DNA of 63,952 bases, filler included, from Octopus bimaculoides (taxonomy: Eukaryota), in the NCBI RefSeq assembly GCF_001194135.2. It is 5 parts of 5 records of this genome, joined end to end, with 100 filler letters (N's around TTAATTAATTAA, not from the genome) between each part and the next. Parts side by side here need not be neighbours in the genome. Positions count along the whole stretch, not along the records: positions 33,882 to 52,201 come from NC_068983.1; 4 more parts are not named here. One strand, written 5' to 3'. Of the stretch, positions 48,720-50,910 are shown one piece after another. The translations under genes and the position numbers were made by a program. How positions within the stretch are numbered: position 1 is the stretch's first letter; each line of letters opens with the position of its first letter. Below the pieces are notes generated by a model, which was not told the DNA's origin, made no database searches, and saw only the letters and a program-made list of their open reading frames with translations.

Positions 48720-50070
48720 TCATTGTGATGACTGTGCACAAGTTTTAAAATTTTTTTTCTGGTGTTTTTTGATAAATGTACTCGCTGGTAAAATTCAGTA
48801 CATGTACCCAAATGACAATGCCCTGAGTGTAGTGATCACCAACAGGAATGGCCGCTTTCCAACTAAACGGAACGACTGTTCATCGATTGCTAAAACTCAA
48901 AGTGCTGCAAGGCAAAATTCCTGTGTATGAGGAACTATCTAAAGACAATCTAAAACTGTTGCGGCCGATGCTTCACTATGTGAGACTGATTATAATCGAT
49001 GAGGTTAGCATGGTCAGTCACTTGCAGCTGGCTTTTATTCACTTGAGATTGTGCCAACTGTTTTAGCCTTTCGGACACATAAACGTGGTTGTCTTTGGTG
49101 ATTTGTTTCAATTACCACCTGTTAGAGAAAAACCGGTGTTTAAAAGAATCAGTCACCACGATGCCCAAAGAGCGTGCTTAGGCATTAGCAGCCGCCATGT
49201 GTGGAGATTCTTTGACTATGATGAGTTGACAATTAACATGCATCAGAAAGACGATACAGAGAATTATGTTAACATGATTGGCCGAATCAGATTGGGTTCA
49301 CCGCTTTACTTCAACATTCAAATTCTCAATGAGCATAGAATTGAACCTAACGGCAAAGATTCTCTCGAACAGGTTACTTAGAAAATGTGTGAACTGACTC
49401 AGACAACTGATTTGAGTATCGTTTGTATTATGGCTCTGAACGAGTCGGTATCGGAGTTTAACAATCTTATGCTCGATAAATTTGGCATTAGTGCTGTCGA
49501 GATTGCGGCTGTTGATTCCAGCATGCGGCAAACCAAATGTCAAAAAAAGAAAGCTAAAAGCAAGAAGTTGATCACCAAGGCAAAAAAAAACAAGAAAACA
49601 TCTAATACTGCCGGCCTTGAAACCGTCCTTAAAGTTGGCATTAATGCTCGAGTAATACCTAAGTGCAACATGGACGTGGATAGCGGTTTGTGCAACGGTG
49701 CGATGGGAACTGTCAAGAGACTCAACTACGAATTTGGAAAGATTACTTCTATTGACGTTCTTTTTGATTGTTTGAACAAAGTTTTTTCCATCAAAACTGT
49801 CAAAGCCGATTACGAATTGTCTCCTGGTGTGTTCATCACCAGAGATCAATTTCCCTTGTGTATTGCATATGCAATTTCTATCCCCAAATCACAGGGAATA
49901 AGCGTCGATGGCGTCATTGTTGATTTGGGGATCGGCGTTTTCTCCGACGGTATGACTTATGTGGCCTTGTCCATAGCTCGCAAACTGCAATGTTCACTTG
50001 ATTGAGCTTGATCCATCGAGTTTGATCATGTGCGATTCCAGCGTTTAGAATGAATACAGCTATTTGAGAG
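48720..50070 (+). pseudogene. Pif1-family SF1B helicase domain of the Helentron
   Basis: ORFs 48848-49066, 49085-49381 and 49385-50005 carry motifs Ia-VI. Walker A is disrupted (SGV...AGK near 48758-48792). Confidence 0.9.
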
Positions 50071-50266
50071 AGCGTATTAATATGGAGCCACTTCCATTGC
50101 GTAATGTGAAGCCTAAAATTATTAAACTGGCTAAAAAGGCGACTAAGAAGGGTAAAGTTGTCATTAATATGGACAGTGAAATCATCAACTTGTCAAAATC
50201 GAAAAAGGCTAGATTTGACAACACAGTTGCAAAGCCGTACATCTCGCTGATCATCGAGAGAAACGC

Positions 50267-50910
50267 GATGGTATTTAGCTGTATGTGCATGATTTTTGGA
50301 AGCACATTTACCATTTCCTGCCTGAAAATGTTAAATAAACGTTCGTGCTCGATGACAATACATTGCTCAGGTGCATTAGAAAATACGAGGCCAATTGCCC
50401 CAAATTACACAATAAGGAGTGTGATTGTACATCGACCAACGGCTGTGGCACTTCCACGAATACGACCAGCCTCAAGTCTGATCTGACGTTGCATTCAATT
50501 AGTGATCGGCAACAGTTTAAGAGCTTGCTCGAAAATGAGGCTTCGATTATCAGGAGGTGCAGACTGTGTGGCATTGACATCGAACGCACTGGCATAGTGA
50601 GCCATGTGTTCCCGAACACTATGCGTTAGCTGATTGTTTATTTGAACAGATTCGAATATATAGACAATCAGGCGGCCAGAATTAATTCAGGGTTGATGAA
50701 TTATTCTCCGAATAAGCAGAACATTAACGGCCAGAGATTCCGATTGATCGGCTCAGTGTCGCATACGTTGTCTAGTGCGGACTCTGGCCAATGCACCAGC
50801 GTCGTTCGCAACGGGACATCATTGACGATGCTATCTTTTCCAAGCAGTATATAGCTTTCCCATCTAAACTGCTTAACGACTGCCTACTGTTCTTGGAAAA
50901 ATTGAAATAA
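50267..50910 (+). pseudogene. Ubiquitin-specific protease (peptidase C19/UCH)-like domain
   Basis: DGI*LYVHDFW (QQDAHEF-like), CRLCG zinc ribbon, FP..R*LIVYLNRF (LxIxLKRF), FRLIGSVSHTLSSADSGQCTSVV (YxLxxVxxHxG..SGHYxx) and, after a frameshift, IIDDA..CLLFLEK*. No Cys box found. Confidence 0.7.

Follow-up and report, generated by a model that had tools for sequence, protein, structure and literature searches.

Helitron-like rolling-circle transposons were surveyed with HELIANO (Li, Gilbert, Peng & Pollet, NAR 2024, PMC11417382), and UCH is among the 20 domains reported there to be stably carried by these elements. UCH is almost exclusive to the HLE2 group and is enriched in its subgroups c and d, whose elements are chiefly those of lungfish and axolotl; the domains EN and Herpes_teg_N serve as markers of subgroup b (PMC11417382). 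The herpes-tegument-like (VTD) domains of Helitrons are active deubiquitinases (Erven et al. 2022, PMC9741609). The same authors describe OTU domains that accompany or replace VTD and put forward a benefit to Helitrons from different deubiquitinase classes, without mention of USP in Helitrons. Our full-text literature searches gave no further description, beyond HELIANO, of a USP (peptidase C19) domain linked to the Rep-helicase transposase (RepHel). Here we describe such a link in a window of 63,952 nucleotides from Octopus bimaculoides, in which about 45.6–51.35 kb on the + strand is very probably an old, dead HLE2 (Helentron/Helitron2) rolling-circle transposon whose RepHel ends in a USP domain. 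The feature at the center of this work, 50064–50910, consists of the linker and USP domain of that transposase, and we document its identity, fold, fusion, conservation and decay.

The RepHel-USP association is catalogued but uncharacterised, and hence of a known kind, with the window copy as a new decayed member. A preliminary description of this DNA had called the family poorly described or new; it is poorly described, but it is not new, as UCH is listed in HELIANO. That listing removes the novelty and leaves the call itself standing. The preliminary description had also named OTU and calpain-like accessory proteases in this superfamily; those documented in PMC9741609 are OTU and the herpes-tegument-like VTD. 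The only additions made here are the presence of USP in one open reading frame (ORF) together with RepHel, and hosts that include octopus and ant.

Compared by domain content, the octopus element resembles the UCH-bearing HLE2 c/d elements of HELIANO in having UCH downstream of the RepHel helicase, no apurinic/apyrimidinic (AP) endonuclease, and DUF6570 in its relatives. It differs in its hosts, which are octopus and ant here whereas PMC11417382 makes no mention of cephalopods, and in the position of UCH, which is in a separate ORF in that study and in the same ORF in four cases here. VTD- and OTU-bearing Helentrons (PMC9741609, PMC4067079) likewise combine an HLE2 transposase with a papain-fold, deubiquitinase-type domain, and OTU occupies the same slot after the helicase, although the deubiquitinase class here is USP/C19 and the octopus element has no AP endonuclease. 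Helentrons in the strict sense share the F-W-R residues before Rep motif 2 and an extra enzymatic domain on the helicase C-terminus; in contrast, the AP endonuclease (Exo_endo_phos) is absent from the window and from all full-length USP-bearing relatives, and terminal features were not found.

The USP domain and its fusion to the transposase

Three-frame translation and motif mapping confirm that a helicase C-terminal motif, a Lys-rich linker and the USP motifs follow each other in the correct order. Frame 1 reads HLIELDP (49995–50015), EYSYLRE (50052–50072), the Lys-rich linker (50109–50216) and KPYISL (50232–50249). Frame 2 continues with (L)YVHDFWKHIYHFL (VHDFWKHIYHFL) at 50279–50320, CRLCG at 50558–50572, LIVYLNRF at 50630–50653, FRLIGSVSH at 50738–50764 and SGQCTS at 50783–50800, with a Gln at 50789–50791, and frame 3 ends the domain with IIDDAIF (50818–50838) and LLFLEKLK-stop (50884–50910). 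The QQDAHEF-like box noted earlier is thus present, albeit about 12 nt away from the position first given to it (50267–50299); its QQ has been lost in a deletion, and the octopus paralogue reads QQCAHDF. All four zinc-ribbon Cys are present in the window copy. Judged on sequence, the match of these motifs to USP is far beyond chance.

The assignment rests on the paralogue and on family profiles, because Pfam misses the window's own peptide. The paralogue is the O. bimaculoides protein LOC128249111 (P0001; 346 aa, 76% identical), the only close relative from a word-indexed protein search. It starts at the helicase C-terminus and runs through the same linker into USP in one frame. In tblastn against the window it matches the USP core at 76% identity (E=5e-86) and the helicase end plus linker at E=4e-39, and it passes Pfam UCH (PF00443) with 30.6 bits against a cut-off of 23.9. 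USP-bearing relatives reach Pfam UCH E values of 2e-22 to 6e-24. An octopus-free profile of 32 USP domains, built without the window and the two relatives nearest to it (P0001 and P0002), matches window 50285–50815 at 77.9 bits, and among PDB entries the family profile finds human USP46, USP12 and USP2 (E~1e-23). When a 10-sequence USP alignment served as the query of a word-indexed search, the only matches were P0001 and a single trypanosome USP.

An AlphaFold2 model was made of the USP domain of P0001 (predicted local distance difference test 71.7, predicted template-modelling score 0.69), and Foldseek matched it to USP46, USP12 and USP21 at probability 1.0 with template-modelling scores of 0.67–0.72; this fold result concerns the domain of the paralogue, not the window peptide. 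A Pfam UCH and structure check had been suggested for the window peptide itself, for which Pfam gave no match, and it is the paralogue that passes both. By profile, modelled fold and paralogue, the window segment is identified as a USP. Cellular USPs (human USP46, USP12, USP2 and USP21) share the Cys box, QQDxxEF box, Cys4 ribbon, GHY His box and Asp box with the family, but identities in fold alignments are only 13–18%, and the Helitron USP is compact (~260–290 aa) and fused to a transposase.

Conservation was counted in an alignment of 35 USP domains, with His and Asp counted over the rows that cover the position. Of the 35 rows, 32 keep the catalytic Cys; the counts for His and Asp are 30 of 31 and 27 of 29, respectively. 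Absence of any of the four zinc-ribbon Cys is rare, and W..[DN]D and N..LLFLEK are conserved, at a median pairwise identity of ~20%. Pairwise identities of the helicase end and of the USP co-vary (Pearson 0.35 without near-duplicates; 0 of 2000 permutations in a Mantel test), which is consistent with co-inheritance of helicase and USP.

Upstream of the USP, on the same strand and in the order expected of RepHel, lie a Rep domain and a PIF1-like helicase. The Rep, helicase and USP of the window are colinear with full-length relatives of 1749–2746 aa at ~30% identity by tblastn. In P0016 (2245 aa), P0047 (2746 aa) and P0021/P0056 (1749/2097 aa), DUF6570, Helitron_like_N, PIF1 and UCH are found in one ORF. 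In the ant Cyphomyrmex costatus, a 1538-aa ORF without interruptions encodes Helitron_like_N, PIF1 and UCH (L004 7829–12445, KQ977956.1). NCBI lists no more of it than an 814-aa "ATP-dependent DNA helicase PIF1", and it may represent a coding-competent RepHel-USP element. The uninterrupted RepHel-USP ORFs thus span 1538–2746 aa; all have an intact Cys/His/Asp triad, and three carry DUF6570. On the evidence of these sequences, USP is fused to the helicase in the window copy, in a second octopus copy (L001, CM046601.1) and in four uninterrupted Rep-helicase-USP ORFs elsewhere. Because RepHel lies upstream, because the ORFs are fused and because the L001 copy exists, the segment is neither single-copy nor unlinked to RepHel. 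The central claim of the preliminary description, a rolling-circle transposon with a USP/C19 domain in the position of the AP endonuclease, is therefore upheld by Pfam RepHel matches, profile, fold and fused ORFs.

An index-free single-sequence search with P0001 over 1.84 billion representatives gave only 55 matches and recovered almost only transposon-linked members. At least 21 family members also match the window helicase by tblastn, and these include nearly all members with at least 110 aa upstream of the USP. The USP starts ~70–150 aa past the helicase end in the window, P0001, P0016, P0027, P0088, P0123 and others. A total of 4550 helicase relatives were found, the best at 51% identity; the closest helicase relatives are 35–38% identical and have hosts that include ants, a parasitoid wasp and a sponge. 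At the same distance after the helicase, this slot holds nothing that could be called, an OTU (P0071 614–695, P0074 664–780 and Amphimedon P0085 556–647) or a UCH (Cyphomyrmex P0088 543–791 and P0123 430–689). No AP-endonuclease motif was seen earlier, and this holds: no AP-endonuclease ORF follows the USP stop (the longest downstream ORF is 73 aa), and Pfam finds no Exo_endo_phos match in the full-length USP-bearing relatives. Taken as a statement of position, "in place of the AP endonuclease" is fair.

A separate observation concerns two of the PIF1-like helicase relatives (P0162 and P0167), in which a RING finger (zf-RING_2, E ~1e-12) is inserted between helicase domains 1A and 2B; such a domain is of the ubiquitin-ligase type, in a family that elsewhere bears deubiquitinases.

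Layout, class and decay of the octopus copies

The window copy lies on chromosome CM046603.1 of O. bimaculoides GCA_001194135.2, near 88.25 Mb, where an exact look-up of its 206-aa ORF places it, within a piece of the window (33882–52201) of AT-rich animal DNA with microsatellites and 3 assembly gaps. The ancestral element would have had a single long transposase gene encoding a basic/zinc-finger N-terminus, a Rep (HUH) endonuclease, a PIF1-like helicase, the Lys-rich linker and USP (peptidase C19). The features of the window copy are as follows.

45640–45909, + strand: possible OTU-like cysteine-protease remnant, frameshifted and with an internal deletion (GACFRCL 45662–45682; GHYDALFP 45876–45899); weakly supported
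45945–46250, + strand: basic Lys/Arg/Glu-rich repeats of the transposase N-terminal part, from translation, with a weak Pfam STPRs match (E=0.034)
46371–46520, + strand: zinc-finger-like CxxC...CC motif (CKTCEKCG 46374–46397; MCCFKDK 46428–46448)
46516–46562: (TG)n microsatellite, followed by an 85-N assembly gap (46563–46647), between the zinc-finger region and Rep
46927–47925, + strand: decayed Rep (HUH) endonuclease domain (Pfam Helitron_like_N, E=3.2e-12)
47897–48840, + strand: inter-domain region between Rep and helicase, colinear in tblastn with P0016, P0021 and P0047
48842–50015, + strand: decayed PIF1-like superfamily-1 helicase, ending MTYVALS...HLIELDP (Pfam PIF1, E=1e-9; Pif1_2B_dom, E=0.0011)
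50016–50231, + strand: Lys-rich linker between helicase and USP, in the helicase frame (KPKIIKLAKKATKKGK 50109–50156; KSKKARF 50196–50216)
50232–50284, + strand: USP Cys box remnant KPYISLIIERN and deletion junction, from alignment with L001
50285–50812, + strand: USP core with QQDAHEF-type box remnant, Cys4 zinc ribbon, LIVYLNRF and His box SGQCTS; 2 in-frame stops
50813–50910, + strand: USP C-terminus with Asp box IIDDAIF, the family ending LLFLEKLK and stop codon 50908–50910, after the frameshift caused by a 10-nt deletion
50911–51345, + strand: non-coding 3' part of the element (...TTAGAAGCTGC), 83% identical to L001 and unrelated beyond

The Rep domain is colinear with P0016, P0021 and P0047 at 29–32% identity, with 6 stops inside the tblastn high-scoring pair. 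Its motif 2, FFWRLDYQMRGTPHVQ, lies at 47355–47402 with the second His now Gln, and its tyrosine motif YVTSYQTK (YxxxY) at 47803–47826. The high-scoring pair over the inter-domain region and helicase (47906–49972) has 9 stops; the Walker A region is degraded, with FFSGVF at 48752–48769 and stops after it, and a 206-aa ORF is present at 49385–50005. The N-termini of P0016 and P0047 have basic repeats resembling those at window 45945–46250, and STPRs is an HLE1-associated domain according to HELIANO (PMC11417382). The zinc-finger-like region is conserved in L001 (87% over 46343–46560), and L001 also has a microsatellite at the place matching the window (TG)n. Non-autonomous HLE2 elements carry internal simple repeats (PMC4067079).

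The Rep residues diagnostic of Helentrons are F/Y-x-R before (V/I)ExQxRG, and a G-x-P residue that is Ser rather than the Helitron Leu (Thomas et al. 2014, PMC4067079). At 47355–47402 the window has F-W-R-LDYQMRG-T-PH, in which the Helentron-type F/Y-x-R signature is present. A second proposed marker of HLE2 is DUF6570 upstream of Rep (PMC11417382). Because of the FWR signature, and because the USP relatives bear DUF6570 and are free of Exo_endo_phos, we file the element with moderate confidence as a probable HLE2 without endonuclease. A canonical Helitron (HLE1) was also considered and was rejected on the FWR Rep signature and the DUF6570-bearing relatives. The shared homology of the two octopus copies ends at 51345 (...GCTGC) on the 3' side, with no T run, CTRR or T-rich end, and alignment of the window with L001 on the 5' side revealed no common start.

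The USP of the window copy is extensively damaged. The preliminary description had noted a missing or deleted Cys box, a Gln in place of the catalytic His and a frameshift before the IDD..LLFLEK ending, and all three are found here. The Cys box is deleted right after LIIERN, with ~160 nt gone by comparison with L001 and P0004, from the codon of the catalytic Cys through the next ~55 codons. The catalytic His has become Gln (CAC>CAA) at 50789–50791 and the adjoining Tyr has become Cys, where P0001 reads SGHYTS. The last frameshift, ahead of the Asp box, stems from a 10-nt deletion that follows VRN. The USP has two stops in the core high-scoring pair and two frameshifts in all. We conclude that the domain as it now reads cannot work, given the deletion of the catalytic Cys, the replacement of His by Gln, and the two stops and two frameshifts. 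The Rep and helicase domains are likewise broken, with at least 15 stops and the loss of the motif 2 second His and of the Walker A region.

The other octopus copies are also damaged. P0001 is dead through a Cys>Arg change (VRFFFVNS) beside an expanded T run, and through a +1 frameshift at WDII; the triad, which the earlier account proposed to follow in other copies, is intact in the uninterrupted relatives and dead in the window and P0001. P0004, from a sequencing-run assembly, has an intact Cys box, YIALINERNVCFVNSTIQ / NERNVCFVNSTIQ, and therefore the family ancestor had a Cys box. Its contig (L005; Logan SRR11869391, 3633 nt) contains the 5' part of the USP on the + strand with this box, joined directly to a reverse-complemented RepHel that is 77–82% identical to window 46843–50071, and is either a rearranged copy or an assembly chimera. 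The contig of P0059 (L007) is 63% alike over one 388-bp stretch only. L001 is an internal-deletion derivative, 78–92% identical to the window, which keeps the N-terminal segments, helicase end, linker and USP and has the same 3' limit. Nucleotide identity with it in the linker region is 91.6% (over 49838–50248), and ~80% amino-acid identity is seen between the linkers of the window and P0001. The annotated gene LOC128249111, at L001 10001–11041, encodes the helicase end and USP (with Cys>Arg) and ends at the frameshift; it is the ORF of an internally deleted Helitron copy, not a host gene.

The octopus copies are on different chromosomes and are 9–17% divergent, which agrees with the expansion of octopus Helitrons reported at about 25 million years ago (PMC13282606). 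Comparison of the two copies gives a dN/dS of 0.55 over the USP core and of 0.63 over the helicase end with the linker, a blend that selection in the master lineage, followed by neutral decay, should produce.

An OTU-like stretch, in a better state than that of the window, is also found upstream in L001 (~9330–9600, YGGNVELAAINELYNVAIQV...HYDALFP). It matches Pfam OTU at E=0.0025 with 18.8 bits, under the 23.3 cut-off, and with a profile made from C-terminal OTUs of Helitrons it reaches 11.5 bits, below threshold. The segment is common to the window and L001 in the same order, and the window's own OTU-like peptide (45640–45909) has no Pfam match. If this is truly an OTU remnant, the octopus family would have carried two deubiquitinase classes at once, with OTU upstream and USP downstream.

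Other repeats are present near the element. A Tc1/mariner-type transposase remnant lies at window 37469–38758 (− strand) and is split by an assembly gap (37519–38053); one of its ORFs matches the Sleeping Beauty helix-turn-helix domain (E=8e-9), and a second is DDE-like by eye with no Pfam match. Window 33917–34683 is an interspersed repeat unrelated to the Helitron, 73–87% identical to L001 12263–12443 and 18092–18947. Just upstream of the Helitron region, at window 44800–45057, an inverted repeat with 27-nt arms (96% complementary, spaced by 204 nt) resembles a miniature inverted-repeat transposable element.

Evidence against the assignment and alternative explanations

Several observations weigh against a USP-bearing HLE2 element. 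The frameshift-corrected USP peptide of the window has no Pfam UCH match. The Rep motif 2 G-x-P residue is Thr in the window and Ala in USP-bearing relatives, and is thus neither the Helentron Ser nor the Helitron Leu. Pfam detects no DUF6570 in the window, nor any other family in the zinc-finger-like region at 46371–46520, and the area is interrupted by the (TG)n and the assembly gap at 46563–46647. In the two octopus copies we found no 5' end, T-rich ends, subterminal inverted repeats or clear 3' hairpin; a strong terminal hairpin was not found (z=−2.1), and neither were terminal inverted repeats. No intact copy of the octopus family was found among P0001, L005 and L007. The dN/dS values are borderline (Fisher p=0.043 for the USP core, 0.03 pooled). 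Lastly, HELIANO places UCH in an ORF separate from RepHel (PMC11417382), unlike the ORFs here, and biochemical proof of Helitron deubiquitinase activity is for VTD only, not OTU or USP (PMC9741609).

The failure of Pfam to find anything in the window peptide speaks for motifs that arose by chance or belong to unrelated neighboring sequences, but the 77.9-bit profile match, and the E=5e-86 match to a paralogue that is itself Pfam-positive and crosses from helicase to USP without a change of frame, make the probability of this negligible. A transposon-derived host gene family comprising LOC128249111 and the window segment is scarcely more credible. NCBI annotates P0001 as a protein-coding gene, and Helitron-derived VTD domains have been domesticated in insects (PMC9741609); however, the catalytic Cys is missing from P0001, which stops at a frameshift, the locus of P0001 is an element with an internal deletion whose ends coincide with those of the window copy, stops occur throughout the window copy, and the copies are dispersed over different chromosomes with the divergence given above.

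It is improbable, albeit less so, that the USP is a passenger, a captured fragment of a host USP gene that does nothing for the element. Gene capture is a known trait of Helitron-like elements, HELIANO frames extra domains as ancient captures (PMC11417382), and the USP is dead in both octopus copies examined. Yet the domain shares its frame with RepHel in four long ORFs that are independent of one another, keeps its triad and zinc ribbon at ~20% pairwise identity, and decays no faster than the helicase end; moreover, of only 55 matches in the 1.84 billion representatives, at least 21 also match the window helicase upstream of the USP. Greater weight, although still small, goes to a USP that cuts the transposase polyprotein or targets a ubiquitin-like modifier such as NEDD8 or ISG15, like some viral papain-like deubiquitinases and USP18. 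Subunit cleavage has been raised for the Helentron OTU (Thomas et al. 2014, PMC4067079), two of three tested Helitron VTD domains also cleave NEDD8 (PMC9741609), and USP18-ISG15 structures are among the Foldseek matches of the P0001 model. Against processing, no Gly-Gly/LRGG-like site was noticed on reading the P0001, P0016 and P0027 linkers, of which no systematic scan was made, and against other modifiers, the best sequence and fold matches are the ubiquitin-specific USP46, USP12, USP2 and USP21. A dead HLE2 element whose RepHel ended in a deubiquitinating USP remains our preferred explanation.

A possible role for a transposase-borne deubiquitinase

In the active relatives, the USP is translated in frame with RepHel, with the Cys/His/Asp triad and Cys4 ribbon kept. 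Most likely, the transposase would carry its own deubiquitinase into the nucleus and to the site of transposition, with the Lys-rich linker as a possible nuclear localisation signal. There the USP would act on the transposase, or on host proteins of replication, repair or chromatin, by taking off ubiquitin or a modifier resembling it, and would so shield them from degradation or signalling. OTU and VTD would fill the same role in other HLE2 elements. The preliminary description had suggested that the USP may stabilise RepHel or act on chromatin or repair factors, which matches the proposal of Erven et al. for Helitron VTDs (PMC9741609). On this reading, the element would gain from an enzymatic activity of the USP on such a substrate.

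The dead window copy is a pointer to a family rather than a functional element. The in-frame USP refines the 2024 catalogue and adds an octopus host, and an ant host via the relatives; for both the annotated O. bimaculoides gene LOC128249111 and the ant "PIF1 helicase", the ORF is that of a transposon. Three unrelated deubiquitinase folds, OTU, VTD and USP, are now recorded in Helitron-like elements. The convergence implied by OTU and USP sharing the slot after the helicase suggests that ubiquitin removal matters for animal rolling-circle transposition. We tentatively raise the further possibility, which we regard as somewhat doubtful, that an active USP is an integral, in-frame transposase module of a whole HLE2 lineage whose hosts include cephalopods and ants, interchangeable in function with OTU or VTD in the place behind the helicase. 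HLE2 rolling-circle transposition would then almost generally require an element to bring its own deubiquitinating activity, a need that different deubiquitinase classes would have filled on three occasions.

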